Sequence record: LC494302.1
Length of the DNA: 64,000 bases
Strand: one strand, 5' to 3'
Shown here: positions 8,554-59,531 of the stretch, piece by piece
Layout of the letters: every line of letters starts with the position of its first letter
Position numbering within the stretch: the stretch's first letter is position 1
Position numbers and translations under genes: made by a program
The notes under the pieces: model-generated
Databases searched by the model: none
What the model was told of the DNA's origin: nothing
The model's input: the letters and a program-made list of their open reading frames with translations, nothing else

Positions 8554-8565
8554 GTAAGGGGATAT

Positions 8566-9406: not shown

Positions 9407-9416
9407 GAGGTTACAT

Positions 9417-10168: not shown

Positions 10169-10424
10169 AGCTGAACTAATAGTTCATACATATAAAATGA
10201 TATCAAGTACTGAGTTATCATATAGTGCAGATAATCCAGTACTGGATTATTTTGTTGAATTATTGAAAGAGCATTATATTGGTAAATCACTGATTCTTAA
10301 TAATATTAATTTCACGGTAAAGGATGTAGCACCTGGAAAAAACGTACTAATAGTATGTGTTACTTCATCTGATAACCCAGTATACCCAATATCAATAATT
10401 TTTGAGATATTAGGAGATTTATGA
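10161..10424 (+). CDS. small paralog (TYK array)
   Basis: MTKAELIVHTYKMI ... EHYIGKSLI; start reassigned from 10038. Confidence 0.7.
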   Translation: MTKAELIVHTYKMISSTELSYSADNPVLDYFVELLKEHYIGKSLILNNINFTVKDVAPGKNVLIVCVTSSDNPVYPISIIFEILGDL

Positions 10425-10711
10425 ATATCATTTTAATGCAGAAAACATATGCTATATTGGTGAAAGATTATTCCATTACTTTCGATTCACAAGAAAGTGC
10501 TCTACATAACCTATACAAAAACGTAACACAAGAATACAGAAATATGTTTTCTGACTTAGTAGTAGGAAGGTATTTCAGTACTAGAAAATACCCAAAACTT
10601 CAAATAGTTGATGTTTCTTTTTATTTCAATGGTCATATTACTATTCATAGTTTAGACCAAGATTCAACAACGTACTTAAACTTTTCATTTGATGAGGTAA
10701 CATTTTTATGA
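10421..10711 (+). CDS. small paralog (TYK array)
   Basis: MQKTYAILV ... DLVVGRYF. Confidence 0.7.
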   Translation: MNIILMQKTYAILVKDYSITFDSQESALHNLYKNVTQEYRNMFSDLVVGRYFSTRKYPKLQIVDVSFYFNGHITIHSLDQDSTTYLNFSFDEVTFL

Positions 10712-11936: not shown

Positions 11937-11945
11937 GGAACTGTT

Positions 11946-12230
11946 ATGGATTTTAACTCACATGCTTGGACATTCGAACAGTATATTTCTTTGTATAATG
12001 AAATATACAATACTGATATGTCATACTGCAATTATTTTAGCAATATGATTGATGAATATTCAAAGGAATTTAATAGTTTATACCTTTATGTGAATAAAGA
12101 AGTTACACATAAGACTATGAATAAAACAGGTACAATTGATGAAATTTCATTTGATACCCGTGGTGTGTATTTCTATATTACATTTTCTGATGATACTCTC
12201 GGTATATACACTTGTAGTGAGTTAAAATAA
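11946..12230 (+). CDS. small hypothetical protein (helix plus beta-rich family)
   Basis: 94 aa; YLYVNKEVTH...GTIDEI. Confidence 0.7.
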   Translation: MDFNSHAWTFEQYISLYNEIYNTDMSYCNYFSNMIDEYSKEFNSLYLYVNKEVTHKTMNKTGTIDEISFDTRGVYFYITFSDDTLGIYTCSELK

Positions 12231-12236
12231 AAATAT

Positions 12237-12261
12237 AGGCCAGCGTTTGCTGGTCTTTTTT
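12237..12261 (+). terminator. intrinsic terminator
   Basis: AGGCCAGC-gttt-GCTGGTCT plus T-tract. Confidence 0.75.
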
Positions 12262-12274
12262 CGCAGGTACAAAG

Positions 12275-12577
12275 ATGCTCAGTATAGATTTAATTAACAG
12301 TACTATCAAAATGTTGGCTGATTTGGTGAGACAATCCAATGGAACTTTATATCCATCAATGTATAAAATGTTTGACCGATACATCAAGGATTGTAACATA
12401 TCATTATATGGACTTGCTGTTGATATAGACGATTACTATGGAATTAATACTTCATATAAAACAGGAATTTTAATTGGTATTAATATAAAGATGGGGTATT
12501 TCCCTTATTACTGTATAGGATTACCAGATAATACTTTGGTAGAATATCCAGCCAGTACTATTAAATTAAGAGGATAA
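12275..12577 (+). CDS. small hypothetical protein
   Basis: 100 aa; INSTIKMLADL resembles TYK-array N-termini. Confidence 0.65.
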   Translation: MLSIDLINSTIKMLADLVRQSNGTLYPSMYKMFDRYIKDCNISLYGLAVDIDDYYGINTSYKTGILIGINIKMGYFPYYCIGLPDNTLVEYPASTIKLRG

Positions 12578-12584
12578 AACTAAA

Positions 12585-13163
12585 ATGAATGTATTAGAAT
12601 TAAGTACTAAGCTGATTAGTATGCGTAATGAGTGGTACGATTGGTTTTATAATGGTACTGATATGGATTTTTCAAAATATCCATTTATGGAATCAGGATG
12701 TGATGCAAGATACCGCTGGTTGAGCAAAGATTGTTCTGGTTTACATATTCTAGTTGACGATAGTGGTCAGGGAATTATAAAAGATTTACTTCAAGTTGAA
12801 CAACTCGTCCATGATAATTGGTGTGATAACGATCCATACCTTGGAAATATGATTTATGTAAGTGAAGATGATTGCATATTCGTTATCCAGCGTCATGGTA
12901 ATTCTATGTTTTATGTAGCAGACAGCAGTACACCAGAAGGTGCAGCAGCCGATGGACTTATGCCTAAGATTGATATATTGGAATTTGGATTACCTGAGCA
13001 CTTCCAGATTAGTACTTTATACGATATTCCACCACTTGAGTTCTTTGAAGAATTTAAATTGTACTACAATGATCTTCAAAAATTGAGTACTGATCGACGC
13101 ATTGAAATAACTGTTAAGTACATGGACGGAACGAAATTAACTGATACGGGGATAGAATTTTGA
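12585..13163 (+). CDS. hypothetical protein (FQ-motif family)
   Basis: PEHFQISTLYD; GAGG SD. Confidence 0.78.
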   Translation: MNVLELSTKLISMRNEWYDWFYNGTDMDFSKYPFMESGCDARYRWLSKDCSGLHILVDDSGQGIIKDLLQVEQLVHDNWCDNDPYLGNMIYVSEDDCIFVIQRHGNSMFYVADSSTPEGAAADGLMPKIDILEFGLPEHFQISTLYDIPPLEFFEEFKLYYNDLQKLSTDRRIEITVKYMDGTKLTDTGIEF

Positions 13164-13849
13164 TTAAAGATTTAGATAGAATTTTATATGTACTAAGGGG
13201 TGTAATTACATTACATCCACAAATCAATCGAATTGAAAGTACATTTCAGTTGGAGTCAAGAGAAACTCCATATTCACATATATCAAATGTAGTTGGTTCA
13301 CTCAGTACTGAAGACTCGTCTTACGATATTTGTGTATGTGAAGTACAACCAAGTTCGGATCTTGGATTTGCTATTTTTGATAAAAATCAAAATCTCATTA
13401 GTATGTTTCAGTGCAATAATCCTTTTTGGAAAACATGCCTGTATCCAGAGTGGGCTATGCTTGATCCAACCAAGAGTACCATTAAAGTTTATGACTCTAA
13501 AAATGATGAAGTCGTTATTGATTTAGATGAGTCAATGTCAGAGGAAGAACACTTTCAGCTAATGATGATGCGTGCTATGCCTGAATACAATGCAATGATT
13601 AACACTGTGCAATACATTAAGGATACCATGCCAGCGTTGCGTACACATGAGTTTTGTCATCCGGTATTGTATGAACATCTAGATTTAGACTTCAGTACTA
13701 TTCAATTTAAAGATAGTGTTAAAAAATATATTCAAGAGAATGTTAAATTTGATTTTATTAGTACTATGAACAATAATCCAAAAACTAATTTTAGGCATCA
13801 GTACAATGAATCTTTGTCTAATGGACGTGATACCAGTTGGTGGAAATAA
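13160..13849 (+). CDS. hypothetical protein (FQ-motif family)
   Basis: SEEEHFQLMMM. Confidence 0.75.
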   Translation: MIKDLDRILYVLRGVITLHPQINRIESTFQLESRETPYSHISNVVGSLSTEDSSYDICVCEVQPSSDLGFAIFDKNQNLISMFQCNNPFWKTCLYPEWAMLDPTKSTIKVYDSKNDEVVIDLDESMSEEEHFQLMMMRAMPEYNAMINTVQYIKDTMPALRTHEFCHPVLYEHLDLDFSTIQFKDSVKKYIQENVKFDFISTMNNNPKTNFRHQYNESLSNGRDTSWWK

Positions 13850-13850
13850 T

Positions 13851-14114
13851 ATGAATATTCAAGATAGATTACAATTACTGTACACACTTGAACAGGCTGC
13901 TTATGATCTTGTTCGAAAAATCTCAGATGAACTACCTAAAGGAACTAAAGTTCGTGTACGTGAGATGAATTATTTTTCTGGAGTAATTGAAGAACAAGTA
14001 CTAACAGTGAATAAAGTAACATACTATGAATCTGAGTTGTCTATTCAGTGTGAATCTGATGATGGATTAATATCATATTATGGAACTGATGTAGATATAG
14101 AGGTAATAAAATGA
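13851..14114 (+). CDS. small hypothetical protein (helix plus beta-rich family)
   Basis: ELPKGTKVRV; start reassigned. Confidence 0.7.
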   Translation: MNIQDRLQLLYTLEQAAYDLVRKISDELPKGTKVRVREMNYFSGVIEEQVLTVNKVTYYESELSIQCESDDGLISYYGTDVDIEVIK

Positions 14115-44852: not shown

Positions 44853-47549
44853 ATGTCAAAGAAAATATATGGTGGCTTAGATGTCACACATAATGTGACA
44901 GTTAATGGTAAAAGAACAATTCAAGGAATAAATGAACAAGTTTTTGATTCCAACGGTAACTTGGAATTAGATACTTATTCCAGAGATGAAGTACTAGATA
45001 TAGTAAGTATGATGCCAATCTCCCATTATGGTTCACAAAACTATCTACCTGCGGGTGTTTCTGGGGATTTCAATGGTGCATCAGAAAACCAGTCACAACG
45101 TAGAAATAAAATTTTATTAGAAAACGATGGTACACTAGTACTTTTACGTAGTGGGACAAACGGTAGTGTTGAGGGATTATTTTATTCATATTTGGCTAAC
45201 GCATTATCAGTTGATGACATGAGCCGTACAATTAACACTAGTCGTCAATACAAGCCTGGGTTTTTTGGTTCAAATAGAGTTGCGATTGGTTTATACAATA
45301 CTGATCCAAATATTTTACTCGGTAGATATATTGATACTTCTAACAGTACTAATGGTTTGTTCATATCAATTACCAATGGTACATTAGATGATAAATTGCA
45401 TACTGGTTTTTTCGTTAACCAAGCAGATATATCACCTGAAGGTGGTATTGAATATGCTATGATGGCAGAAGATGGTTCTATATATGTTTTTAACGTACTT
45501 AATGAAAATAACCAACTACAATTAGTTGTTGTTAAAGTTGTTTATAATATAAGCAATGGTACTTATACTGCAACTCGAATTACTGGATGGACTACTAAAA
45601 CATTTTATAACACGACATATTCTGCACAAAATAATATGGTTATTACTAATCAGGTAACATCAACAAATATTGCTGATAAACCTTATGCTTATGTCCCACA
45701 AAATCTACGCGGTATTGGGATTTACATGACATCAATTGATTTATATGTTGCACAGCAGCCAGGAACGCAGAATTTCCGCTTTAGAATGAACGGGGACGCT
45801 TGGTTTACAATGGCAACATATAATACACGTCCACAGCATAGTTACAGTTTTGTGTTCAATATGAGTACTAAACAATGTACATTAGATGCGGGTAATGATA
45901 TTGGTTCATACCAAGCACCATTAGTTATAACGGATACAGGTTCAGCATTAGTTCCTACTGGTAACGTTTTAAATAACGATCCATTGTATAACCATGCAAA
46001 TGCAAGGAACATTTACAGTTCTTATTTTTATTTAAATTCAGGTGAAGCATTTTGTACTGCATGTCCAAACTTAGCAGAACCATTACTTATGCAAAAAGCT
46101 AAGTTTCCTATTCAAATAGTTTATAGTATGCTGAATGTCCGTGCTGTACTTTCTACTGACTTCAAAGGTGGCATAGTTCGCCCGTCTTTTGGTTCAGCGG
46201 TTGGTTCATTTATTAATGGTGTAGAATTACTACCAGATAACAGTACTAAACAATATTCACGTGCATCAGGTAGTGGTGGATTTAGACCATCATATGCAGT
46301 TCATAAAAGTACTCCTAATTTTACATTTAAATCATTATCTTTAGGAACAATACAAGGTTATGAACCTACAGTTGAACGTGCTAATGTTGATGATAATGCA
46401 AATAATAGAATTTTTATTAGTAGTATTTCTGGGTCAACTGTCACAACCAATGGTGGTATTTTTATGGTTGGGCAACGTTATTCACAATCATTATCCTATG
46501 ATAAAAACTTAAATGGCACAGGAATTATAAGCGTTACACAATCAGTACTGGACAATTTTAGAAATACTGAATATGCCAAAGTTCTAAGTGATTGGAATTT
46601 ATCAGCACAAGCATACCGTGATATGACACTATTTGTTCCACAACAAACAGACATTCCAGCTTTTGTTATGTTGAGTACAATTACTAATGATTATAGAAAC
46701 TATATTAGAATTGCTGAAGTTAATGTCAATACTAGAGTTGGTAATATTACATCTATTACATTTAAGCGTTTAGTACTTGAGAATACGTATGGTGATAACT
46801 TTACACCAACTGGGAATGGTTCGATTGCATCTTCTTCTGTTGGTTTGACAATATATGATGGTGGTTCATTCTACTTCATTGGTGGTTCTGACCCATTATC
46901 ACATCCAACAATAGGTAATACTGCAACTCATCAATTTAGAGCATATGTAACTAAATCAACTGCACAATTTACAAGTTTTATAATTACTGGATCTCATGCC
47001 AGTTATGAACAAGGAAGTCAACCAGCAGCATTACCTGGTATTGGTTTTGGAATTTTTGAACCAATGGATTACTCAAATAAAATGACATTCAAAAAATATG
47101 GAACAACGATTGCAGACTATAATAACTGGACTGCACAAGGTAGCCCAATTAACGTAGTATCCCAGGACGTTGCTCAAGGGTTTATTGTATATTTTACAGA
47201 GGAAACACCAGTTATTCTTTCAGGTAAGTCATTTTCACTACCAGTTTCAAATATTGATTTGAGAACTATTAAGTCTAATCCAGCAAATACAACATTTTAT
47301 GTATATGTTAAATTGGAACAAGGATTGGCAAACTATTACATAACTACTGATGTTATTTCTGAAACAGGAACAACTGCATATAATATTTTTTGGATAGGTA
47401 CAATTCAAACTAATGCAATTCAAATCGAAACAATTAATATACAAAAACGTTCCCGTTTAGATATATTTGGTGCTTCACTTGAATCAGCAGGTTCATCGTT
47501 CCCAGTTAGCTACGGTCTACCATCACAAACAGGAACCATAAACTGGTAA
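44853..47549 (+). CDS. large putative virion structural (fibre/baseplate-type) protein A
   Basis: 898 aa, G/S/T/N-rich, late-type promoter; paralog of 48165-50894. Confidence 0.75.
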   Translation: MSKKIYGGLDVTHNVTVNGKRTIQGINEQVFDSNGNLELDTYSRDEVLDIVSMMPISHYGSQNYLPAGVSGDFNGASENQSQRRNKILLENDGTLVLLRSGTNGSVEGLFYSYLANALSVDDMSRTINTSRQYKPGFFGSNRVAIGLYNTDPNILLGRYIDTSNSTNGLFISITNGTLDDKLHTGFFVNQADISPEGGIEYAMMAEDGSIYVFNVLNENNQLQLVVVKVVYNISNGTYTATRITGWTTKTFYNTTYSAQNNMVITNQVTSTNIADKPYAYVPQNLRGIGIYMTSIDLYVAQQPGTQNFRFRMNGDAWFTMATYNTRPQHSYSFVFNMSTKQCTLDAGNDIGSYQAPLVITDTGSALVPTGNVLNNDPLYNHANARNIYSSYFYLNSGEAFCTACPNLAEPLLMQKAKFPIQIVYSMLNVRAVLSTDFKGGIVRPSFGSAVGSFINGVELLPDNSTKQYSRASGSGGFRPSYAVHKSTPNFTFKSLSLGTIQGYEPTVERANVDDNANNRIFISSISGSTVTTNGGIFMVGQRYSQSLSYDKNLNGTGIISVTQSVLDNFRNTEYAKVLSDWNLSAQAYRDMTLFVPQQTDIPAFVMLSTITNDYRNYIRIAEVNVNTRVGNITSITFKRLVLENTYGDNFTPTGNGSIASSSVGLTIYDGGSFYFIGGSDPLSHPTIGNTATHQFRAYVTKSTAQFTSFIITGSHASYEQGSQPAALPGIGFGIFEPMDYSNKMTFKKYGTTIADYNNWTAQGSPINVVSQDVAQGFIVYFTEETPVILSGKSFSLPVSNIDLRTIKSNPANTTFYVYVKLEQGLANYYITTDVISETGTTAYNIFWIGTIQTNAIQIETINIQKRSRLDIFGASLESAGSSFPVSYGLPSQTGTINW

Positions 47550-47560
47550 AGGATTACATA

Positions 47561-48148
47561 ATGGCATATAAAATAAGAGCAGACCTTAAGGCAATGCAAC
47601 AAGTAACAGTTCAGGGTAAAAGTACTGGTCTTGGTGTATTAGGTAATAATATGACTTATTACCCAACAAATTCAAATGGGGAATGTACATTCCCCTCTAT
47701 TACCAAAGATGAAGTTAACTTTATTGTCAATGGATTACCACTTACACAATACGGAGAATTGTATGATGACGCTAGTCTAAATATTACTTCATCAGGCTAT
47801 AGTCTTACATTTAACAGACAGATACCATCATTTATTGGTGGTTATCTTTATAAATTTCCAGCAGTTTCTATTTTTGCTTCAACTGTTTCATCTGGAACAC
47901 AAACACAATACGTATATGCAACGTTAGTTCTCGGTGAACCAATTTATAAAATATCACCAACACAAATACAAGAATCTGAAATTATAATGTTTATTGGAAC
48001 ACTGACCGTTGGTACAAGTGGTATTACAAATATAAACATTAATAAAGTATCCAGATTTAGTACATATAGACCTAGTGTTACACAAAAAGGTTCTTCATTC
48101 CCAGTCAGTACTGGAAAACCATCAGAAACTGGTACAATTGGTTGGTAA
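47561..48148 (+). CDS. short putative virion protein sharing end modules with the flanking paralogs
   Basis: C-terminus KGSSFPVSTGKPSETGTIGW versus AGSSFPVSYGLPSQTGTINW. Confidence 0.75.
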   Translation: MAYKIRADLKAMQQVTVQGKSTGLGVLGNNMTYYPTNSNGECTFPSITKDEVNFIVNGLPLTQYGELYDDASLNITSSGYSLTFNRQIPSFIGGYLYKFPAVSIFASTVSSGTQTQYVYATLVLGEPIYKISPTQIQESEIIMFIGTLTVGTSGITNININKVSRFSTYRPSVTQKGSSFPVSTGKPSETGTIGW

Positions 48149-48164
48149 ATTAAGGAAAAGAAAG

Positions 48165-50894
48165 ATGTCATCAAAACGAATTATAGGAAGTGCCGAGATC
48201 CTTGGGAACTTGGCAATTGGACAAAGGTACGCTATGCGTACTTTTAATGGAACCTCACCGAATGCCAATACTGGAATTGTTCAATATCCAATATATAAGC
48301 GTTCAGAAGTTCAAAGTATTTTAGATATGTTGCCTATATCACGTGTAGGAGAAATGGATTACTTACCATTAAACGTAAGTGGATCGTATGAAGGTGCTAC
48401 ACCTATGTCAAGTGACCAAGTAGTTCAGCCAACAATTATTGAAGATGATGGAACCGCCGTTGTTCTGCGTAGCGGAACCAATGGTAGTACTAAAGGTTTT
48501 TATTATTCATTTATACGAGATCTCCGAAATATAACTATGATTTCACAAGAAAGTGTTATTTCAACCAATTCAATGTATAAACCTTCAATTATGAGTAGTA
48601 CTGAAAATATTAAGTATTTTATTGGCTCTAATGGTTATGAGATGCTTGGATGTTTAAGTACTGAAGATAATTATATTTTTACTATAACCAATGGCACATT
48701 TAACGAAATATCACATATTCATGCTAAAGTTCCAAGTACTTCTTTTGGTAATGATATGCCAATATATACACATATTGTTGGGACAAAGGTTTATATTTGG
48801 TGTAAAGATAAAAGTGTTTCTAATTTAGGATTAGCACTTTCAATTTATACAGTAGAGCTAAGTGATGTGAAAGCAAGCTCAATGGCATCATTAACAAAAG
48901 TTACTGGGTTATCAGGTCAAACTGTTCGAAACACAAGTTATTCTGCATCTAATAACATAAGAGTGTTCGATAAATTATATAGTGTTGGTACTAGCTCGGA
49001 TTCATTATTCGAAGTTACATCACCAGTATCACGTGTAGAATTTTCAGACTATACAGACTTTAACATTCAAGCCAACGTTAGTCCTGATTTATCAAAAATA
49101 CGTGTAACTTTATATCCAACACATCGAATGGTTACACCTTTGTATATTTCAACAGTTTATGGTACTGGAATAAGTTTTGTTTATAATATAAACTCAAAAT
49201 CTATGTCACTAGATGGTAGTGCTCGTGCACCTGCAACTGTTTCATATAATAATGGATTTCAAGTTTCTAACCCATTTGAAATTAATATGGTCAACTTCAC
49301 AGGGACAACTGCTGCTGGTGTATTAGGAAACGCAGGTGGTTTATGTCAAACTAAAGATGGTTTGGTATTTGCATCTAAATTTAGATGGAGTTCAACTGAA
49401 TTTTATGGTCTACAACGATATAAGGTTAGTGGGACACCGTTTGATTCATGGGTTGCCAGTACTAGAACCGCAAGTAACGTTATAAATGCAAACGTTTTAC
49501 CAGTTTTTGGTAGTGCTGTTGGTGCAAACCTTTTAGGTGTACGTTTCATCGATAATAGAAAAATATTATTAGCATGTTCTGGTACGTATGATGATGTAAC
49601 ATATAATTATAATAATACTGTTTTTTCTGAAATAGGTTCACAACCAACATATCAATATAACTCAGTTCAAAATAATACTACATTAAATGGTTTTGCACCA
49701 CAATCTAATCGTAAACAAATAGGCGATGATTTTACATACACTGCTATGATTTCTCTTGTTGATACCGATGGTAGTGTTAGATGCTATGGAACATCATTCA
49801 TTGAAGGTGTATATAAAACAAGTGGTGGATTATTAAATCCAGATACTTTAGAATTTGATGAAACATATACAATAGAACCAACGGTATTAGAATCATTAAA
49901 ACAAGATATTTTTGCTAATATAGGAAACTCTGGCATTGTTGGTACACTATCTGGACAAATTGTATTATATTATGTACCTGATAATACTTTTTCTAAATCC
50001 ATCGCAGTAGTTTCAGCATATAATCTTAACAATAACCAAGGTTATGCAATCTATGCCGAAGTTGATGTTGTATTATCTGGAACTAACATAACTTCAGCTA
50101 CATTGGTGAGTACTAGATATGAGACACTTAGTTCTGTTACAGGAATTATTACTGAAGCATATATGAAACGTTGTACTGGTCTAACAGTTGCAAAATATTC
50201 AGGATTTGGTTACATTGGTGTTGATGCTGTTCATCAATTTTCACAACCAGGTAATGCACAATTTAAGATGATGATAGCTAAAACAGTAGATGGTGTCATA
50301 ACATCAAATCGTTTTTTATCATCTAGTTACATCCAACTTGGTGCAGCATATCAACATGGTGTTATTCCTGGTGTTGGTTTTGGATATTACAATTTTCAAG
50401 ATTCTGACTATCAAACCAAATCTGTATTCAGCGTTTTTGGTACAACATCTGCTGAAATGGATGGTTTAATTAGCGGAAATGGTAGCGTTAAAGAAAAGAT
50501 TGTGGTAGTATCACAAGACGTTGCACAAGGATTCTCAGTGTACTTTACACGTGAAGTTCCGGTGTTTTTAGGTGGAATTTTCGACAGACTACCTATACAA
50601 AGTGTTGATTTAAGTACTGTAAAAAGTAACCCAGCTAATACTACGTTCTATTTGTATATACAAATGAACAGGAATACTAAGAAAGCGTCATATGTTATTA
50701 GTACTGAAACAATTGATGAATCTTTAACTAGCACTTACATTGGTAAGATAGTTACTGGAACTTCAGGAATAACTTCAATTGATACAGAAAAAGTAACTCG
50801 TTTTTTGACATATCGTCCAAGTACAACGAAACGTGGTTCAGCGATACCTGCCAGTACTGGTGTACCATCAGGTCCAGGTACACGTTGGAAATAA
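48165..50894 (+). CDS. large putative virion structural protein B
   Basis: start reassigned behind AAGGA; DDG..VVLRSGTNGS and VVSQDVAQGF.VYFT.E.PV shared with protein A. Confidence 0.75.
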   Translation: MSSKRIIGSAEILGNLAIGQRYAMRTFNGTSPNANTGIVQYPIYKRSEVQSILDMLPISRVGEMDYLPLNVSGSYEGATPMSSDQVVQPTIIEDDGTAVVLRSGTNGSTKGFYYSFIRDLRNITMISQESVISTNSMYKPSIMSSTENIKYFIGSNGYEMLGCLSTEDNYIFTITNGTFNEISHIHAKVPSTSFGNDMPIYTHIVGTKVYIWCKDKSVSNLGLALSIYTVELSDVKASSMASLTKVTGLSGQTVRNTSYSASNNIRVFDKLYSVGTSSDSLFEVTSPVSRVEFSDYTDFNIQANVSPDLSKIRVTLYPTHRMVTPLYISTVYGTGISFVYNINSKSMSLDGSARAPATVSYNNGFQVSNPFEINMVNFTGTTAAGVLGNAGGLCQTKDGLVFASKFRWSSTEFYGLQRYKVSGTPFDSWVASTRTASNVINANVLPVFGSAVGANLLGVRFIDNRKILLACSGTYDDVTYNYNNTVFSEIGSQPTYQYNSVQNNTTLNGFAPQSNRKQIGDDFTYTAMISLVDTDGSVRCYGTSFIEGVYKTSGGLLNPDTLEFDETYTIEPTVLESLKQDIFANIGNSGIVGTLSGQIVLYYVPDNTFSKSIAVVSAYNLNNNQGYAIYAEVDVVLSGTNITSATLVSTRYETLSSVTGIITEAYMKRCTGLTVAKYSGFGYIGVDAVHQFSQPGNAQFKMMIAKTVDGVITSNRFLSSSYIQLGAAYQHGVIPGVGFGYYNFQDSDYQTKSVFSVFGTTSAEMDGLISGNGSVKEKIVVVSQDVAQGFSVYFTREVPVFLGGIFDRLPIQSVDLSTVKSNPANTTFYLYIQMNRNTKKASYVISTETIDESLTSTYIGKIVTGTSGITSIDTEKVTRFLTYRPSTTKRGSAIPASTGVPSGPGTRWK

Positions 50895-50961: not shown

Positions 50962-51528
50962 ATGGTCAAAACTTTATTACCACCACCAAAACGTCACAAA
51001 ATCAAAGAAATGAAAGAACAACGTACATTAAAGATGTACAACAATTTAGTTAAGTTACTGTGTAAAAGTCCATCGCTCAAAGCAGAGTTTAAAACTGATG
51101 ATGACCGTAAAGCACTAATTGAGATGAAATATATGCTCAGTAAAATGTCCTTTTACAAATTTGTAAAAGAATACGCATCTGACCCATTTAGTCCTCGTTG
51201 GAGAGCCAAACCAAGAGAGTATTTTTACGGTGGTTCATATACAGATCGCATTCAAGACACAGTGATGGGAGTTGAATTTGAAATCGATTATGAGCCGAAT
51301 GGTGAGGAAATCTTGCAGATTGAGAAACGTTTACCAAGTGAAGAAGAAATTTATGTTTATGCAAGAAAACTTTCAAATTACAGTTCAAGAATTACTCTAG
51401 GCAATTTAGATTCATTAATTATTTTCTATACACGTGTTGGTGTAGATAAGATGGTAACTAAACTCAATGAACTTTCATTACAACAAAAACAGATTAATGC
51501 ATACAAAGACATTACTGATTTATACTAA
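50962..51528 (+). CDS. hypothetical protein (tandem trio member 1)
   Basis: DDDRKALIEMKYMLSK; AGGAGG SD. Confidence 0.8.
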   Translation: MVKTLLPPPKRHKIKEMKEQRTLKMYNNLVKLLCKSPSLKAEFKTDDDRKALIEMKYMLSKMSFYKFVKEYASDPFSPRWRAKPREYFYGGSYTDRIQDTVMGVEFEIDYEPNGEEILQIEKRLPSEEEIYVYARKLSNYSSRITLGNLDSLIIFYTRVGVDKMVTKLNELSLQQKQINAYKDITDLY

Positions 51529-51534
51529 TGAGGA

Positions 51535-52056
51535 ATGGATATGTTTTTTGGATCAGTTGGAAAACAAAACAGTACTTTAATTTGGCATGAAATTATCTTC
51601 AAAATTATATCTAAAAGCTACTCACTAAAGGATATTATCACCACAGATAATGATAGACGTATCCTGTTAGATGCAAAATATAAATTGAGCAAACACCCTT
51701 TACTTTCTTTAATCATTGATTACGTTAATGATTATGAATCTAGTCGTTGGAAGTGGGAAGACGGCGGTTTATTTCGTGGAAAAACATTCTACGGTGCGGA
51801 ACGATATGTTTTCAGTGATGCATCAAATGGCGTTAAGTTTGTTATTAGAAACTTTAACTCCAAAGAAAATGATTATCTTGAAAGTGGAGTGAAAGTATAT
51901 ATCGATAATAATAGCAATGTCCTAACATATGACGAATCACTAATTATGTTACAAATAATGCGTGGTGTTGAAGGTGTAAGAAACAACCTTACTAAATTGA
52001 AAATCCAGCAAAATGATATACATAATAGACAGAAAATTAAGGGTTTATATAAATGA
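51535..52056 (+). CDS. hypothetical protein (tandem trio member 2)
   Basis: DNDRRILLDAKYKLSK. Confidence 0.8.
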   Translation: MDMFFGSVGKQNSTLIWHEIIFKIISKSYSLKDIITTDNDRRILLDAKYKLSKHPLLSLIIDYVNDYESSRWKWEDGGLFRGKTFYGAERYVFSDASNGVKFVIRNFNSKENDYLESGVKVYIDNNSNVLTYDESLIMLQIMRGVEGVRNNLTKLKIQQNDIHNRQKIKGLYK

Positions 52057-52562
52057 TTTCATTTTTCAAAAAGAAACAAAAAGTTGATGAAACAGGATTA
52101 GAATCGTTTCTATGGACTCTTATCATCAAAAAAAGTCCATTGATAAAAGAATATGCTATCAATGATGCTAATAGAAAAACTATCATTGAATACAAATACG
52201 AATTATCAAAATGTGATCCAATCGTTTATCACTTTGCGAAGTACTGTTCAAAAAATTTATCGGATATCACAATAGACCATGAGTCAGTTCCAATGAGCTT
52301 TCCTTATGGTGATTGGGTAGATACTTTTGATATTTTTGATGGGTCCAATGGATTCAGTTTCTTTTACTCGTCAAATAAAGCAAATGTTCGTATTAAAACA
52401 GAGATAGGTTGGGCACAGCATAGCTCAAATAAAGAAGATTATAATTTACTAGCTGACGTATACCGAAGTGTGAAGAATTCAAAGGATATTGATGAAAGAA
52501 TTAAAAAGCAAAATCGTATTTCTTTATCACTTGAAACATACAAGTCAAAGTATGGTGGTTAA
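52053..52562 (+). CDS. hypothetical protein (tandem trio member 3)
   Basis: DANRKTIIEYKYELSK. Confidence 0.8.
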   Translation: MISFFKKKQKVDETGLESFLWTLIIKKSPLIKEYAINDANRKTIIEYKYELSKCDPIVYHFAKYCSKNLSDITIDHESVPMSFPYGDWVDTFDIFDGSNGFSFFYSSNKANVRIKTEIGWAQHSSNKEDYNLLADVYRSVKNSKDIDERIKKQNRISLSLETYKSKYGG

Positions 52563-52564: not shown

Positions 52565-52966
52565 ATGACTACAGTTGATGATATCTACAGCACTATACGC
52601 AATATGAGTACAGATAGAAAAGTATTTGGTGATAAAGAAAAATCTAAGTGTTATGGTATTGATTCTTTTGATATAATTTCTTATGAGTACAACACGAGTG
52701 GAAATAGTTCACTGAATATCGTCTGCCCTCGTGACCCAGAAAATAATTTTATGTATGTTGAAATTAATAATGATGGAATATTTTTTACAAAAGTTTTTAA
52801 AGGTGGAATTAATTACGAACCAATTGAATGTATGAATGAAGAAACTTTCTTTCAAGAAGATACAATTATCAATTTAGGTTTTAGTTTTGATGATTATAAA
52901 ACATTAGAACATGACTTTAATCGTTATTATAACGGTTTCTTAAAGGAGTTAACAATTTATCTATGA
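52565..52966 (+). CDS. hypothetical protein (FQ-motif family)
   Basis: MNEETFFQEDTI. Confidence 0.72.
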   Translation: MTTVDDIYSTIRNMSTDRKVFGDKEKSKCYGIDSFDIISYEYNTSGNSSLNIVCPRDPENNFMYVEINNDGIFFTKVFKGGINYEPIECMNEETFFQEDTIINLGFSFDDYKTLEHDFNRYYNGFLKELTIYL

Positions 52967-54195
52967 ATAACCAATATGTTGAACAAACAATAGTGAAACA
53001 CTTGGCTGGGTCACAAGCCTACGGAACCAGTACACCTGAAAGTGATACTGATTATCGTGGTATTTTTCTTGCTAATAAAGAATTTATTCTTACGCCATTC
53101 TATAAGGTCAAAGAAGTAGCTGATAAAAATGAAGAAGATACTAAATTCTATGAGTTAAATCAGTATTTAAAATTATACACTGAAGCCAACCCTAATATAT
53201 TGGAATCACTATGGGTCGAACCAGAACACATTGTAGAAAGTACTGAGATTTATGACTATCTTCGTTCATTTAACCAAAAACTTCTTAGTTCTAAGATTGC
53301 ATTTTCATATACTGGATATGCATATAATCAGATTAAGCGTATGACAAATCACCACGGTTGGATGGATAAAGAGCGTATTGCTGAAAAACGTTTAAATGAG
53401 ATTTTAGAAGAACACCCAGTCGATGAGGTTCTTGCGTGGATGTATGATTCATTTCCACAATATCTTGTTGAACGTTTAGATACATCGAACTTACATCCAT
53501 TTAATGCTAAAAAGATTGATTTTGAAAAATATATGCGTGATACGTCATTGCAGTTAGTTTCGAAAAATCCATTAAAGCAATATCATTTTGTAAAATTAGT
53601 GCATAACTACACTACTGACAAAATTCTAGATCGTGATTTCAATTTATTGAATTTTAATAATGGCTATGAACTAATTCATTACGGAGAAAACATTTTTGCG
53701 ATTATTAAAAATCCGAATGAAAGCACTATCAACGGTGATGGATCATTGCGTTATTTTTCTAAAGAGCGTAGTACTGAAGAGTTGAAAACTAAACCAGAAC
53801 TAATTGTCAAATTTAACGAAAAAGAATATCAGGAAAATAGTGAGAATAGGAAAAGTTATCATAAATGGAAAGAAAATCGTAATGCCAAACGTGCTATTTT
53901 AGAATCACAACACGGATACGATTGTAAACATGCTATGCACACAATCCGACTTTTGAATAGTGCAGAAGAAGCATTACAAAGTGGAATTATTCAAGTTAAA
54001 CGACCAGATGCACAAATGTTGATGGATATTCGTAATGGTAAATGGAAGTATGAAGAAGTATTAGAATATTTCGATGATAAAGTACAATACATTCGTGATG
54101 TTCTATATAAGAAATCAGTACTTCCTAAAAAACCAAACATCAAGTTAGCATCAAAAATTATCATTGATATTAGAGAAATGCAATGGTATAAGTAA
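52963..54195 (+). CDS. Pol-beta-superfamily nucleotidyltransferase (PF10127/RlaP-like)
   Basis: AGSQAYGTSTPESDTDYRGIF, ANPNILESLW, GYA..Q, GYDCKHAMHTIRLL. Confidence 0.87.
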   Translation: MNNQYVEQTIVKHLAGSQAYGTSTPESDTDYRGIFLANKEFILTPFYKVKEVADKNEEDTKFYELNQYLKLYTEANPNILESLWVEPEHIVESTEIYDYLRSFNQKLLSSKIAFSYTGYAYNQIKRMTNHHGWMDKERIAEKRLNEILEEHPVDEVLAWMYDSFPQYLVERLDTSNLHPFNAKKIDFEKYMRDTSLQLVSKNPLKQYHFVKLVHNYTTDKILDRDFNLLNFNNGYELIHYGENIFAIIKNPNESTINGDGSLRYFSKERSTEELKTKPELIVKFNEKEYQENSENRKSYHKWKENRNAKRAILESQHGYDCKHAMHTIRLLNSAEEALQSGIIQVKRPDAQMLMDIRNGKWKYEEVLEYFDDKVQYIRDVLYKKSVLPKKPNIKLASKIIIDIREMQWYK

Positions 54196-54272
54196 CATAT
54201 ACAAGTGTAATGGTACTAAAAATGCCATTACACTCAATAAATACTCAATATAAATTAACACAAGGATTAAGT

Positions 54273-54900
54273 ATGGCACAACAAATTTTCACAGATATCC
54301 ACACTACCGGAGTTATTAAATTTCAAAATAATTTTTCAGGTGCAACTGGTGTAGACATTAAAAATGATGGTTTTAACATTGTCAGTACTCGGATCTATTG
54401 ATGGTGAAGATAGTTCTCTTAGTGATTCTGTGATTGCATCATTCGGAACTAATAAAAACAGTTCTTTTATTATATCTGGATGGACTGGAATGACTGATTC
54501 TGAAAATAATGTTAAGATAAAAGCTAAATCTACTAACGAGAATCATGAAACAGAATGGGTAACATTATATGATAGTGCAAGTAATAAGTTATATAATGTA
54601 CTAAGTTCTAATAACATTTTAATTAATCCACTGTCGGGTAATGCTGTTTTTAATATTAATTTATCTGATAGAAATACTACTATTTCGATTGGTGCGGCTC
54701 CTACTGAAGTTTATTCAATTACCATCCTATTAACACAACAAACAGGTTCAAACCTAGTTAATTGGGGTTCTAATGTTAAATGGTCATATAACAGACCAGT
54801 TGTTCTTTCTTATGAAATTGGCGAAAAAGATATTATTTCATTAGAAACATATGATAAAGGAGTTACATGGTACGGTGCATTAATTAGAGCAGGAGTATGA
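54273..54900 (+). pseudogene. structural-type gene split by an apparent +1 frameshift (54273-54401 and 54364-54900)
   Basis: ATG 54273 has an AAGGA SD; downstream piece lacks an SD; C-terminal TILLTQ.TGS..VNW...VKW...LS....DII...YD.G.TWYG module seen in phage structural proteins. Confidence 0.6.
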
Positions 54901-54901
54901 T

Positions 54902-57691
54902 ATGTTAAACAATAATATTGATAATATTGTACAACTTCTTTATGGGCATCACAAATTTATTGAAAGAAATACTGGTGATACAATAGACCCAACAGTACAA
55001 CATTATGTGGTGAATAATCAGGGTGTTTTGGCGAACAACCGTCATTTTATTAACTATTCTGCAATGGAAGGTCAACCAAACGGTGACGGGACAACAGAAG
55101 GTCAAAGTCTATTAATTTTAGGATACATTTATGCGTATCTGGCAACAAATGATCCAATGTTTTTAGATAAAGCCAAATGGTACTGGGATGCATATCATCA
55201 GTACTTTTATGCTGGGCGTGAATTACCAGACCCACCAACCCCACTGCAATGTAACTGGATAGTTAATGCCAAAGAACCGATTTTGGCTAACTGGCCTTTA
55301 GCTGATGATGGATGGCCTACACATGGTGGTTTCAAGGGTGTAGAATTTACATTTACAAATGGACAATGTAAAATACCACATGGTGCACCTTATTATGGTC
55401 AGTTCTTGGATAAAGTAACATTTGCATTCAAAGGTGCTTTAGCATGGAACCAAATAAATGCGTCAGTAAAAGCATTATTACCAGATGGTAGTGTTGATTG
55501 GGATACACCAGGTGAACAATATGATGTTGACTGGATTATCGATTTCATGGGTAGAAAAATCGACTGGGATGGTAATATTTTAGCAGAAGGTTTTGACGAA
55601 TCTGAAAAAGGAACTGTTCAATTAAAGAATACAACAATTAATGGTGTATATAAATTAAATTTTGCAAATCGTCAACCAGTAGAATATGGTGGTGTGATAA
55701 TTCAACGAAATGAAATGCAACACAACCGCCCTCTTCATGTTCCAATTGATTTGGAATTTGCTGATAACGCATCAGATGCAGAATTATGGTTTAGTGATGC
55801 TTCTTATTTGTTATATAAAATAACAAAAGAAAGAAAACATTATTTGGGTTGGAAATGTTCACTACTAACGTGTTATGCTTATGGTGATATTGACTCCAGA
55901 GATAAATTTTTCAGACAAAGTACAATTGTAACCACACCATTCACTGATGGTATTTCCTATGAATATTTTTATCCAAGTGATGCTATTGCTAAGTTTGGTA
56001 GAAATTCTCTAGGATATATTACTATCAGGCAAGACCAAAGTGCACAAAGTACTATGGAACAACAAGCTATTTGGTTCAGGGTCAATGCTGATTCTAAATT
56101 ACTTGTAGACTATGGTGGTGTATGTGATGATGGTAAGCCGTTATCATTTAAACCAGTACTGGAATTGTCAAAAACAAAAAATGACCATGATGTTGTTCGT
56201 TATCGTTGTGGCTTACCGGAAAGTAAAGACCAAAATATCACACATTCATTAACACCTTTAAGTGCATTTGTTAGAGAAAAGAAAGCAGATGGTTCCCCTT
56301 ATATAATTGCTGATAGTAGAATTGTTGTTCCTTATGGTGCAGCTACGTCCGAAATGATATATAGTACTGATATATTAGTTACACGCCGCGATACCATTAA
56401 TCAGTTAGTTTGTGGTGAAGATGATGGTGCTGTTATTGGATTTTGGCTATTAGCAACAAATAAGTCTGAAGTTAAATCTTTTACCTATCGTTCATATGAA
56501 GATGATTACAATATAAGAATTGTAGATGATAATGGTTGGAGATGGTGGTGGATGATTCCTGCAACACACGGGGAATGGACTACAATCACACTAAGTTCCG
56601 ATACATTACGTTTATCTGGGTATCAGCCAAATCATCCAAGTTCTGACCCAAGACCAGATGCACCAGTTTATAGTGAACTAGAAGATATTACTATTTTACC
56701 TGATACAACCCCAGTAGATGGTGTTGCTGCAATAATTGATTGGTATTGTATTAATGACATTCCAGAATTATACACGGATGCTGACGGTGATGACTATACT
56801 ATGACATTTTCAATAACAATTGCAGGTGAATCACCATATACTGCACAGTTAGGGGATTGTGTAATCAAGGATTATTTGTTAAACTCATTGCATTACACAC
56901 CAGGAACAATACCATTTTCTAACATCACTGACCCGTATGCGAACCAGTATTCAGGATGGCGTGGTTTACCGTATCCAGGTTATCAATATCCTGTGATATA
57001 TTGTTTTAAAGACCAGCCGGTAGATAACACACGCTTAGGAAACATGTTAAGCTTTATGAAAGATTCCCAAACATGGTTTACTCAACAATTCGGTACTGTT
57101 GGTCCGTGTGCACAAGCATATGTTTGGAACCGCTGGGATAACTTAAAATATGGTGAACCAGATACATTTACTATGCTACATTGGGGTGATCAAGCATGGA
57201 GTGGGTATGAACCACGTGCGTTCTTTGGGGCTGCCAGAGCATGGCAAGAACTCGCAGAGAGAGGAATTGAACCACCAGCAGATCTTGTTGAATTTTGTGA
57301 GAATTGGATTCACTTTTTAATTCAATTTCAAAAAGATAATGATGGTCGTTCACCAACAATCTTCAATAAAGATGGCACAGTTGAAGGTCCAGATTGGGAC
57401 TTTACAGGTCATATGTGTGGGTTGTGGTTAGCTGGGGCTTGTGCTGCTGGATTGGCTGGATGTAAAATAGAAGGTCTAACAACACTCGCTGATAACTTAG
57501 TTCTCGAACTTCAAAAGAATTATGTTATTGTAAATCCAGGTTCACCAATGAATGGTTCATGGAGTCCAGCAGTTAGAGAAGGTACTGATAATGGTATGTT
57601 TTTTGGTTTCTGGGCAGGTGAGATTATGCGTGGATTGGGATTATACTCAATGTACCGCTTAAACACACCAAATCGTTTCCGTGATTTATAA
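54902..57691 (+). CDS. GH8-like (six-hairpin) glycoside hydrolase with inserted beta-domains
   Basis: GTTEGQS and DNASDAELW match recalled GH8/BcsZ motifs TSEGQS and NSASDGDVW; Trp-rich insert. Confidence 0.65.
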   Translation: MLNNNIDNIVQLLYGHHKFIERNTGDTIDPTVQHYVVNNQGVLANNRHFINYSAMEGQPNGDGTTEGQSLLILGYIYAYLATNDPMFLDKAKWYWDAYHQYFYAGRELPDPPTPLQCNWIVNAKEPILANWPLADDGWPTHGGFKGVEFTFTNGQCKIPHGAPYYGQFLDKVTFAFKGALAWNQINASVKALLPDGSVDWDTPGEQYDVDWIIDFMGRKIDWDGNILAEGFDESEKGTVQLKNTTINGVYKLNFANRQPVEYGGVIIQRNEMQHNRPLHVPIDLEFADNASDAELWFSDASYLLYKITKERKHYLGWKCSLLTCYAYGDIDSRDKFFRQSTIVTTPFTDGISYEYFYPSDAIAKFGRNSLGYITIRQDQSAQSTMEQQAIWFRVNADSKLLVDYGGVCDDGKPLSFKPVLELSKTKNDHDVVRYRCGLPESKDQNITHSLTPLSAFVREKKADGSPYIIADSRIVVPYGAATSEMIYSTDILVTRRDTINQLVCGEDDGAVIGFWLLATNKSEVKSFTYRSYEDDYNIRIVDDNGWRWWWMIPATHGEWTTITLSSDTLRLSGYQPNHPSSDPRPDAPVYSELEDITILPDTTPVDGVAAIIDWYCINDIPELYTDADGDDYTMTFSITIAGESPYTAQLGDCVIKDYLLNSLHYTPGTIPFSNITDPYANQYSGWRGLPYPGYQYPVIYCFKDQPVDNTRLGNMLSFMKDSQTWFTQQFGTVGPCAQAYVWNRWDNLKYGEPDTFTMLHWGDQAWSGYEPRAFFGAARAWQELAERGIEPPADLVEFCENWIHFLIQFQKDNDGRSPTIFNKDGTVEGPDWDFTGHMCGLWLAGACAAGLAGCKIEGLTTLADNLVLELQKNYVIVNPGSPMNGSWSPAVREGTDNGMFFGFWAGEIMRGLGLYSMYRLNTPNRFRDL

Positions 57692-57692
57692 C

Positions 57693-57752
57693 TTGACATA
57701 GAAAAAGTAATTATGTATAATCAGAGAACTTCATATGGAGTTCTCTTTTTTT
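57693..57752 (+). promoter_or_regulatory. consensus sigma70 promoter overlapping an intrinsic terminator
   Basis: TTGACA-N17-TATAAT (57693-57721) then AGAGAACTTC-atat-GGAGTTCTCT plus T-tract. Confidence 0.8.
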
Positions 57753-57765
57753 ATAAGGTGATAAA

Positions 57766-58185
57766 ATGTTAAATGAACGTATTAAAAATGCACTACATGT
57801 ATTGAACCAAGAAGTAAATTCTATTGATAAAAGTACTGACCGTTATAAAGTAATGCATGAAATCAAACAAGAATTGGAATCTATTAATAAGGGAGAATGG
57901 TGGTATCTTCAGCCCGAATATCAAACTCGTGAATTAAACGATGTTGAAAAAGAAATTGTCAAATTCATCACTACTCGTTACTGTGATACATCAGAGAATG
58001 AGGTATCAGCGAACTTCAATCTTACTAAATTGGAAGTCGAAGAAAAATTCAATTTTGATTGGCTTGATTGGATTGAAATGGTCATGGAACTAGAAGAAAA
58101 ATTCAATGTTGAAGTTGATGAAAAGTTCGAGAATAATGAAACGAAGCTGTATGAACTAGTAGAACATATTCAAAAAATGTTGTAA
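57766..58185 (+). CDS. acyl-carrier-protein-like protein lacking the phosphopantetheine Ser
   Basis: FDWLDWIEMVMELEEKFNVEV aligns with ACP [21 protein letters not shown]; ~55 aa N-terminal extension. Confidence 0.75.
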   Translation: MLNERIKNALHVLNQEVNSIDKSTDRYKVMHEIKQELESINKGEWWYLQPEYQTRELNDVEKEIVKFITTRYCDTSENEVSANFNLTKLEVEEKFNFDWLDWIEMVMELEEKFNVEVDEKFENNETKLYELVEHIQKML

Positions 58186-58238
58186 AACTATACAATTGTA
58201 TACTCTAAATAATATCATCAACTATAGGAGATATTATT

Positions 58239-58613
58239 ATGAGTATGTTAGAAATAATTGTTTCAAAAATTCTTATTCCATTTTGGAAACCAATTTCTTT
58301 TGTATTATTAATTGGCGGTTCAGCTTATGCTGGTTGGGAAGCTAATACTTATTACAGTGGATATCAACAAAGCATAGAGCAACAAATAGCTAAAAAAGTT
58401 GATACCGCCTTGGATAAAATGCAACAAGAAAATGCAAAAAATTACCTTGAAACTAAAAAAATCATGGAAGATAATGCTAAAGTTATTGAAACAAAGGTTC
58501 CTTTTATTGTAGAACGTGAAGTTTATAAGAATGTATGTTTAGATGAAGATGGTGTAAAAGTACTGAATGAACTAAAACAAAATTCTCAAGCAGCGAGGAA
58601 TAAATTCAAATGA
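58239..58613 (+). CDS. i-spanin (Rz-like)
   Basis: N-terminal TM helix, coiled coil, VEREVYKNVCLDEDG; overlaps a lipoprotein gene. Confidence 0.72.
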   Translation: MSMLEIIVSKILIPFWKPISFVLLIGGSAYAGWEANTYYSGYQQSIEQQIAKKVDTALDKMQQENAKNYLETKKIMEDNAKVIETKVPFIVEREVYKNVCLDEDGVKVLNELKQNSQAARNKFK

Positions 58614-58918
58614 AAAAATTATTAGTTCCGTTTATTTCTTTTTTAATTATAAGTGGGTGTGCCGAACAAGTAAAACTACAATCCCCTGCACCAATTAAAC
58701 AAGAAATTCTGTTAGAAAGATGTGATGATGATACACCTCTACCACAAAAAATTATGATTGACAAAAATGGTTTTAAAGGTTATGATGGTGCAGAAATTCT
58801 TAAAGTACTTACTCGTTGGGATGCAGTCTACAATGAATGTGCTTTAAAACATGACGCATTGATTAAAACTATTCGTGATTTACAAGGTAAAGATATTAAA
58901 ATCAATATCAAGGAATAA
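58610..58918 (+). CDS. o-spanin (Rz1-like lipoprotein)
   Basis: lipobox ISGC, LLERC..PLP, YNECALKHDALI. Confidence 0.72.
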   Translation: MKKLLVPFISFLIISGCAEQVKLQSPAPIKQEILLERCDDDTPLPQKIMIDKNGFKGYDGAEILKVLTRWDAVYNECALKHDALIKTIRDLQGKDIKINIKE

Positions 58919-58919
58919 A

Positions 58920-59531
58920 ATGAACAAATATCATGTTTACTATACGACAAAATTATCACTTCTTGAAGAATTAAATCAACGAAGTACTAAGATGAAACGC
59001 TACACTTTAAATGGTATTACTTTTCGATATTTCCCACAAAAAGTTCTTACTTTTGTTAAGAATCCAAAATGCGTGGCATGTGGGATTGAAGCTACTGAAG
59101 TACGCATTGAACGTTCATTATGTTCTGATCCAGTATATGGTAAACCACATTTAAATGTATATGCTGTATGTGGTCTTTATGAAGTTTTAATGACAGTTGA
59201 CCATAATCATCTGGCATCTAAGGGTGGACCTGATTTAGAGTCAAACTTTAATACTATGTGCTCCAGATGTAATCAACTACGTTCGAATAAAACTGAAACA
59301 GTTGATGAGTTTCTTGAAAAAGTTAAAGGTCGTAATCTTCTCCAAGAACATATGAATAATTTCTTTAATGTACAAAAAAAGAAAAATAACATTGACAAGT
59401 CGAAACTACTAGAAGAACGTAGGTTACGTCAAGAATTATGGGAAACCGATCATCTATGGCATGTTCGAGAGTTTGGTCGTCATATGAAAGCTTTGAAAAA
59501 AGAACAGAAGAAATTGAATAAACATGATTGA
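58920..59531 (+). CDS. HNH endonuclease-like protein
   Basis: CVACG ... TVDHNHLASKGG...NFNTMCSRCN; start reassigned behind AAGGA. Confidence 0.8.
   Translation: MNKYHVYYTTKLSLLEELNQRSTKMKRYTLNGITFRYFPQKVLTFVKNPKCVACGIEATEVRIERSLCSDPVYGKPHLNVYAVCGLYEVLMTVDHNHLASKGGPDLESNFNTMCSRCNQLRSNKTETVDEFLEKVKGRNLLQEHMNNFFNVQKKKNNIDKSKLLEERRLRQELWETDHLWHVREFGRHMKALKKEQKKLNKHD

Follow-up and report, generated by a model that had tools for sequence, protein, structure and literature searches.

What a large tail protein of 929 amino acids (aa) does in the 347-kb jumbo myovirus SP27 (LC494302.1; genus Asteriusvirus, species PBECO4), and which host structure it acts on, is the question raised by the locus described here. 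The window is a stretch of 64,000 nucleotides (nt) of this record, of which positions 54000-58200 are 100% identical to positions 240000-244200 of LC494302.1. A preliminary description of the window, made from its letters alone, had read the protein as a glycanase of family GH8, similar to the cellulase BcsZ, which might depolymerize the cellulose of biofilms. After comparison of sequences, profiles and predicted structures, we propose with moderate confidence a different reading, in which the protein is a virion-borne, adaptor-docked and glycan-directed receptor module that is not aimed at cellulose. The gene in question is the following:

54902..57691 (+): 929-aa tail protein of the phi92 gp141 family, modelled as an (alpha/alpha)-barrel that two beta-rich inserts split

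The open reading frame (ORF) at 54902-57691 exists as first described, and its translation contains all three motifs that had drawn attention to it, i.e., TTEGQS (residues 64-69), ATND (81-84) and DNASDAELW (288-296). It is not a chance frame, since 270 homologs were found at E<=1e-3 (best E=0) in a search of 5.8 billion proteins and phrog_2871 'tail protein' in PHROGs matches it with E=0 and 1510 bits. The best 120 of the 270 homologs, encoded by jumbo phages, by marine bacteria and by prophages of E. coli, Enterobacter and Pseudomonas, are 41-100% identical and mostly near full-length. A further search of 1.84 billion representatives yielded 385 matching clusters, and the best 150 of them, which are large proteins or short partial matches, include no free-standing cellular relative of the barrel. 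Homologs are carried by 531 of 50,697 phage records, and a prophage version is found in 1 of 5,426 complete E. coli genomes. About 20 relatives of SP27, among them 121Q, PBECO4, phAPEC6, G17 and Sharanji, share 98-99.5% identity with it over 54000-58200. Outside this group, identity is 57% to phi92 gp141 (over 99% of the length), 54% to the phAPEC8 homolog, 45% to homologs of T7-like podoviruses such as Yersinia phiR8-01, 43-45% to those of Felix-O1-like phages of Erwinia, 43% to those of Rosemountvirus and of Seoulvirus-type jumbo phages, 34% to those of Vibrio phages and 31% to those of rV5-like phages. The N4-like Stenotrophomonas phage Philippe also carries a homolog.

The SP27 protein is a member of an already known phage tail protein family, to which phi92 gp141, PVP-SE1 gp050 and the rV5-like proteins (phrog_2871) belong over their full length. 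Databases name it 'putative tail fiber protein' in SP27 and 'tail protein' or 'tail formation protein' in other records. A glycosidase label has also been used before: a review table citing Schwarzer 2012 gives phi92 gp141 as 'Glycosidase' (PMC5380687), and the BASEL annotation of the JeffSchatz protein (GenBank note, bas55_0025) reads 'lateral tail fiber protein with glycosidase domains'. SP27 and phi92 have the same small fibre gene upstream (gp140 in phi92). They differ in that the SP27 module stands alone, distant from the baseplate genes, and is without the N4 gp65-like neighbour that follows gp141.

Presence in the virion is supported by an ortholog. The 929-aa ORF is the last of a three-gene unit (54273-57691) that begins with ORFs of 42 and 178 aa. 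The corresponding protein of phAPEC6, gp314c, is 99.9% identical to the SP27 protein; mass spectrometry of virions recovered 8 of its peptides (13% coverage), and the study names three putative tail fibre proteins, gp314c being one of them (PMC7247149). The 929-aa protein is therefore probably virion-borne, as the preliminary description had supposed. In the same study, gp315c (4.66 kDa), the ortholog of the 42-aa ORF, was found in virions with 69% coverage (PMC7247149). The 178-aa ORF is unannotated in phAPEC6 and therefore could not be scored.

The fold was examined by AlphaFold2 using an alignment of 68 sequences. The full model has a pLDDT of 89.9 and a pTM of 0.83, and DSSP assigns to it 11 long helices (residues 6-22, 65-82, 85-102, 291-308, 311-327, 709-730, 769-786, 793-812, 836-851, 859-872 and 904-919). 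In this model the parts of the protein are arranged as follows:

54902..55216 (+): barrel helices 1-3, residues 1-105, with TTEGQS at nt 55091-55108; E66 and Q68 open helix 65-82
55217..55756 (+): beta-rich insert A, residues ~106-285, with strands over 120-274; beta-sandwich and carbohydrate-binding module (CBM)-type matches in Foldseek
55757..55900 (+): barrel helices 4-5, residues 286-333, with DNASDAELW at nt 55763-55789; D292 opens helix 291-308
55901..56971 (+): beta-rich insert B, residues ~334-690, with strands over 352-656 and a Trp-rich stretch at ~541-552
56312..56833 (+): sub-domain of residues ~471-644, which includes the Trp-rich stretch and occurs alone in other tail proteins
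56972..57688 (+): barrel helices 6-11, residues 691-929, covered by a separate AlphaFold2 model and Foldseek search

The barrel had been thought to be split by one long CBM-like insert; the CBM-like character is borne out, while the number is two (~106-285 and ~334-690). When the full model was compared with the PDB by Foldseek, the helical part matched GH48 cellulases, GH88, GH116 and glucuronyl C5-epimerase (prob 0.97-1.0), and the beta parts matched sugar-binding domains (CBM22, CBM11, EngBF and Vip3). Insert B, which to judge from the model probably comprises more than one beta-sandwich domain, matched a CBM22 tandem (prob 0.95-0.97) and CBM11 (prob 1.0). Over residues 478-622, its sub-domain hits phrog_23426 'tail protein' (E 1.6e-26), and the matches of the proteins P0232, P0245 and P0264 are confined to profile positions ~471-644. 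No right-handed parallel beta-helix tailspike domain is present in the model, which consists of an alpha-barrel and beta-sandwiches, or among the top structural matches. Among predicted viral structures, Foldseek matched relatives annotated as tail fibres in phages of Klebsiella, Alteromonas, Pseudomonas and Erwinia. Sequence and profile searches of the PDB with the 929-aa protein found no relative, and literature searches on six-hairpin phage proteins and on SP27 itself gave nothing useful.

Because the search with the full model was dominated by multi-domain beta matches (EngBF, Vip3, CBM22), residues 690-929 were also modelled alone, with a pLDDT of 93.3. For this model, (alpha/alpha)6-barrel enzymes make up 49 of the 50 best PDB matches; almost all of these enzymes are carbohydrate-active, and they include GH48, GH76, GH88/105, GH8, GH116 and epimerases. 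GH48 gives the best E-values (~2e-3), and GH76 and GH88/105 give the best TM-scores to the query (0.54-0.57), the GH8 structures 4q2b and 6g09 being lower (0.38-0.49). The models thus support the six-hairpin (alpha/alpha)6 fold class, in line with the helical barrel first suggested from the sequence, with no single family singled out.

Conservation was counted in 68 close relatives and in a deep set of 35 sequences reaching down to 20% identity. Nine residues are kept in 68/68 close relatives and in most of the deep set: E66 (32/35), Q68 (33/35), D292 (33/35), W296 (31/35), R367 (34/35), Q723 (35/35), D746 (29/35), R772 (32/35) and E907 (31/35). The catalytic-type Glu of TTEGQS is thus retained, as had been noticed at the outset. 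E294 is likewise kept in 68/68 close relatives but in only 19/35 of the deep set, and W766 and Y769 are also among the conserved residues of the barrel part 691-929. In the AlphaFold2 model, E66, D292, R772 and E907 each lie within the first four residues of a barrel helix. In six-hairpin enzymes, the catalytic residues are located at the N-terminal ends of the barrel helices. From these helix positions we infer that E66, D292, R772 and E907 may line one pocket.

Such a pocket could hold a sugar without cleaving it, and the protein could be a non-catalytic, lectin-like receptor binder whose conserved polar residues serve that purpose. Many phage fibres bind without cleaving, no match to an enzyme family reaches significance, and no clear conserved second carboxylate can be assigned as a base by homology. 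On the other hand, E66, D292, D746 and E907, together with Gln, Arg and Trp residues, are near-invariant down to 20% identity, which is a typical active-site pattern, and the 49 of 50 best structural neighbours of the C-terminal half mentioned above are enzymes. We regard pure binding as rather unlikely. A second alternative keeps the fold and changes the chemistry, to a lyase, an unsaturated-uronyl hydrolase of the GH88/105 kind or an epimerase, with an acidic polysaccharide of the envelope as substrate. Foldseek indeed matched GH88 (4q88), GH105, the polysaccharide lyase 5noa and the glucuronyl C5-epimerase 4pxq, as well as cellobiose 2-epimerase and sulfoquinovose isomerase, with TM-scores equal to or exceeding those of GH48. 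However, there is no sequence-level match to any of these enzymes and the matches reflect a generic barrel, so that this alternative appears improbable.

The remaining enzymatic alternative is the one proposed originally, namely a GH8/BcsZ-type endo-beta-1,4-glucanase carried on the virion and cutting the cellulose, or phosphoethanolamine (pEtN)-cellulose, of the biofilm matrix. The likeness to BcsZ and GH48 lies in the (alpha/alpha)6-type barrel; in addition, a Glu in a T-(S)-E-G-Q-S context that opens the second helix and an Asp in an A-S-D context that opens the fourth may correspond to residues of BcsZ, and the E66-D292 spacing, once insert A is subtracted, resembles the BcsZ spacing. To compare the two families, BcsZ (368 aa) was taken from an E. 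coli chromosome and a profile was made of 18 aligned BcsZ sequences; this profile is shallow (the listed homologs are >=61% identical), which limits sensitivity. With this limitation, hhalign of the 35-sequence phage family profile against the 18-sequence BcsZ profile gave a probability of 0.5%; against BcsZ alone it gave 0.3%, and an unrelated trehalase used as control likewise 0.3%. When pieces chosen post hoc were compared alone, the motifs paired with BcsZ in the right order: residues 40-112 pair E66 with BcsZ E55 (6.8% probability, pairwise E 0.005), and residues 280-335 pair D292 with BcsZ D116 (7.8% probability, pairwise E 0.004). Since these alignments reach 7-8% and were selected after the fact, we take them as a lead, not as proof. 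No alignment of the BcsZ catalytic-base region was obtained by either whole-profile or piecewise hhalign, and in the Y-x-x-R stretch 769-772, position 770, which matches that region, is not a conserved acid, being Gln in 48/68 relatives. No counterpart of the BcsZ base was thus identified; D746 and E907 are the conserved acids in this half of the protein.

The 929-aa protein has no Pfam hit of any kind, and none to PF01270 (GH8), even at E<=1, and searching the PDB by sequence and by profile at E<=10 brought up no GH8 chain. The best Foldseek E-values belong to GH48 and the GH8 structures 4q2b and 6g09 are among the matches, but the TM-scores of GH76 and GH88 are better than those of GH8. BcsZ further differs in lacking the inserts of ~180 and ~355 residues that split the phage barrel, and in showing no significant sequence or profile similarity to it, while GH76 and GH88 superpose at least equally well. 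Membership in GH8 is therefore not supported: neither Pfam nor the PDB provides a sequence match, hhalign stays at 0.5%, and GH48, GH76 and GH88/105 rank ahead of GH8 in the fold searches. GH48 and GH8 share a clan, and a distant link to GH8/GH48-type enzymes is possible. With regard to cellulose, no link was found. The family is similar across phages of very different Gram-negative hosts, being equally conserved in phages of Stenotrophomonas, Vibrio and Yersinia, and close relatives were isolated on E. coli K-12, which is not known to make cellulose. It is thus very unlikely that the protein is a GH8-type cellulase, the earlier proposal of a biofilm-cellulose depolymerase is not upheld, and the cellulose/GH8 label should not be spread further.

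For the receptor-module reading, the gene directly upstream provides further evidence. It encodes a small protein with a conserved C-terminal domain:

54364..54900 (+): 178-aa small 'tail fiber' protein, the proposed adaptor; counterpart of phi92 gp140
54595..54897 (+): conserved C-terminal domain of the adaptor, residues ~78-178; common to all partners and the proposed docking surface

The 178-aa protein matches phrog_32568 'tail fiber protein' with E 3.8e-119. Its last ~100 residues match the C-terminus of a 560-aa partner in an E. coli prophage (BLASTP E 2e-14), and the same C-terminal match is found in phi92 gp140, phiR8-01 g043 and the swi3 partner; when the partners were aligned, 12 residues of the domain proved invariant (Q125 to G171). 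The partner domain occurs in 515 phage records, compared with 531 for the 929-aa protein, with the same taxon profile. Moreover, the partner lies directly upstream in every pair inspected, i.e., in phi92, phiR8-01, swi3, JeffSchatz, Philippe, phAPEC8, rV5_ev146, Vibrio phages and the E. coli prophage. The coupling to a structural-type gene that had been pointed out for SP27 therefore holds in all of these pairs.

The N-termini of the partners, by contrast with their C-terminal domain, vary among phages. The partner of the podovirus phiR8-01 begins with T7 gp17-N (PF03906), that of the rV5-like JeffSchatz with Tail_spike_N (PF18668), and that of the siphovirus-type E. coli prophage with a lambda tail-tube-like domain (PF16461, just above the cut-off); in the SP27 protein, the domain search recognised no N-terminal domain. 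Since the N-termini vary and the C-terminal domain is conserved, the partner resembles an adaptor whose plug changes with the lineage while its socket stays constant. The same anchor domains are known from T7 gp17-type fibres and from the 'Tail_spike_N' proteins CBA120 TSP1 and G7C gp66, and their presence on the phiR8-01 and JeffSchatz partners fits a branch-on-anchor design. Unlike in those systems, the anchor and the large head are here separate polypeptides, which would be joined via a dedicated conserved domain of 100 aa, and an alpha-barrel takes the place of the usual beta-helix in the head. Some relatives of the 929-aa protein are fused to a P2 baseplate protein I (gpI) domain (P0067) or to N4 gp65-like NCTSP domains (P0116, P0141); in phi92, an N4 gp65-like (NCTSP-like) protein, gp142, is encoded by the gene after gp141.

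Two observations on partner-bearing records may be added. In the E. coli prophage, the 560-aa partner is encoded at 8319-10001 of the examined stretch and no other tube gene is evident there; the 929-aa relative of this prophage might decorate the tail tube. In addition, the percent identity of the 178-aa query to MG065646.1 and MG065645.1 ('Campylobacter phage D1' and 'A145'; 137 and 146 kb) equals its identity to rV5-like and phi92-like coliphages, and judging by these sequences, the names or hosts of the two records may be wrong.

The gene positions also bear on whether the protein is an assembly factor or a component of capsid or tail 'hairs', with no role in host recognition. The SP27 gene lies far from the baseplate cluster and among non-structural genes, phages of the phAPEC6 type bear hair-like appendages of unknown composition (PMC7247149), and the prophage partner begins with the tail-tube-like domain mentioned above. 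However, the phAPEC6 ortholog is present in virions, the pair in phiR8-01 and Philippe sits where these podoviruses encode their only fibres, and the pair is embedded in the baseplate/fibre cluster of phi92 and of rV5-like phages. We consider such a role highly improbable.

If the 929-aa protein is a receptor module, its target can be approached from its distribution. Members from myo-, sipho- and podoviruses that infect Escherichia, Salmonella, Vibrio, Erwinia, Yersinia, Pseudomonas and Stenotrophomonas keep 43-57% identity, and because this cross-host identity is unlike that of fibres tracking variable O-antigens or capsules, a conserved target is indicated. In phiR8-01, the adaptor and the homolog stand at the gp17 position and are the only fibre genes; this phage uses the inner core of lipopolysaccharide (LPS) and infects only strains without O-antigen and outer core (review table, PMC6950378). 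By analogy with phiR8-01, the LPS inner core may be the target of the family, which we offer as a tentative guess, possible rather than likely.

The mechanism that we propose would proceed as follows. The variable N-terminus of the 178-aa adaptor would plug into the tail of whichever phage carries it, and the constant domain at its C-terminus would hold the 929-aa protein. The beta inserts would bind surface glycan, and the barrel would present a pocket lined by E66/Q68, D292/W296, R367, Q723, D746, R772 and E907, which would bind, and probably hydrolyse, a glycosidic bond in a conserved glycan of the Gram-negative envelope, with the LPS inner core as the best current guess. In this way the virion would be drawn to the outer membrane, and in the giant phage the module would be one of several host-recognition devices. 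The preliminary description had spoken of a virion-borne matrix-degrading enzyme or glycan receptor binder; the virion location is supported by the phAPEC6 ortholog and a glycan-directed role is a possible one, whereas the cellulose matrix as target is not retained.

Several points weigh against this mechanism. The families of CAZy, Pfam and NCBIfam gave no match to the 929-aa protein. The Foldseek E-values of the barrel model (residues 690-929) are 2e-3 to 5e-2, and the grouping of the conserved residues into a single pocket is deduced from their helix positions. Contact with the adaptor is proposed on the grounds of co-occurrence, of the order of the genes and of the fusions seen with other partners; a fusion of adaptor and enzyme was sought among N-terminally extended relatives, and none of these is such a fusion. 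The LPS inner-core proposal stands on one relative and one review table. Finally, a 2026 cryo-EM paper on phi92 makes no mention of gp141; the same paper leaves a short, thick 'fiber II' unassigned.

A link to the N4 'glycan deacetylase' fibre and the NGR receptor was also considered and rejected, as that fibre corresponds to phi92 gp142 and bas55_0034, which are of the NCTSP type and unrelated. The 929-aa protein shows no similarity to JeffSchatz bas55_0034, and the Pfam domains PF23844 and PF23845 are absent from it. The N4 gp65-type fibre with these two domains is encoded beside the family member in phi92, and some relatives have the two as a fusion; like the family as we read it, this fibre is a conserved, glycan-directed part of the same fibre loci (PMC8594841; PMC8669472). 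The NGR dependence of Vequintavirinae has been attributed to the gp142 / bas55_0034-type fibre and not to the 929-aa family (BASEL, Sellner et al.). In the examined stretches, phi92 gp142 (11877-14036) and JeffSchatz bas55_0034 (8588-10660) contain Calx-beta, N4 gp65-type NCTSP_N and TIM-barrel domains; given the NCTSP_N and TIM-barrel domains, the BASEL 'deacetylase' fibre is a relative of the N4 tail sheath protein.

Further features of the SP27 locus concern its layout and possible transcription signals:

54249..54256 (+): TATAAATT motif in the 77-nt gap preceding the three-gene unit, shifted by one base from the coordinates of the preliminary description (54248-54255); candidate late-type promoter element
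54273..54401 (+): 42-aa ORF, first gene of the unit; phrog_29689
57723..57746 (+): terminator-like hairpin with a 10-bp stem and a T run, 32 nt past the stop codon of the 929-aa ORF

The 42-aa ORF (54273-54401) and the 178-aa ORF (54364-54900) overlap by 38 nt in different frames. Only 1 nt separates the stop of 54364-54900 from the ATG of the 929-aa ORF, which makes translational coupling plausible, and a Shine-Dalgarno sequence, AGGAG, precedes the 929-aa ORF at 54891-54895. The motif TATAAATT occurs 20 times in the window versus 14.9 copies expected, a number reached in 11 of 100 shuffles; since this is not above chance, the motif alone is no promoter evidence. The T4-type late-promoter octamer TATAAATA is depleted, with 2 copies versus 12.7 expected, and 100/100 shuffles held >=2 copies. 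The hairpin at 57723-57746 is probably, as its sequence suggests, the 3' end of the three-gene unit. A perfect sigma-70 consensus (TTGACA, 17 nt, TATAAT; 12/12) is located at 57693-57721 with the hairpin directly after it, and both sit just upstream of the gene at 57766-58185. The G+C content is ~33% throughout the window, which contains no tRNA genes.

The neighbouring genes were also surveyed. Two ORFs of ~900 aa (44853-47549 and 48075-50894) fall into phrog_3573, a family of unknown function; neither has a Pfam domain or is related to the 929-aa protein, and comparison of the latter with the neighbouring 939-aa ORF found no paralogy. Three tandem ORFs of 169-188 aa at 50962-52562 fall into the related families phrog_18641 and phrog_7868, and their sequences suggest a small paralog array. 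Directly upstream of the tail module, positions 52963-54195 encode a 410-aa RlaP-like nucleotidyltransferase (PF10127, E 3e-16; phrog_388). Downstream are genes for an acyl-carrier-protein-like protein (57766-58185; weak Pfam matches only), an Rz-like spanin (58239-58613) and an HNH endonuclease (58875-59531).

The two-gene module of adaptor and head appears to move among at least seven phage lineages while staying ~45-57% identical, which is unusual for receptor-binding proteins. A more far-reaching possibility, which we judge to be decidedly unlikely, is that it represents an undescribed family of carbohydrate-active enzymes, in which a six-hairpin barrel, split by binding domains of its own and delivered to myo-, sipho- and podoviruses by a universal adaptor, cleaves or grips the LPS inner core or another pan-Gram-negative glycan. 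If true, this would be a host-independent 'last-step' device, unlike the known serotype-specific depolymerases. As more than 500 sequenced phages carry the family, the structure or ligand of one member would annotate all of them, and might help to account for how broad the host range of phi92-, rV5- and PVP-SE1-like phages is.

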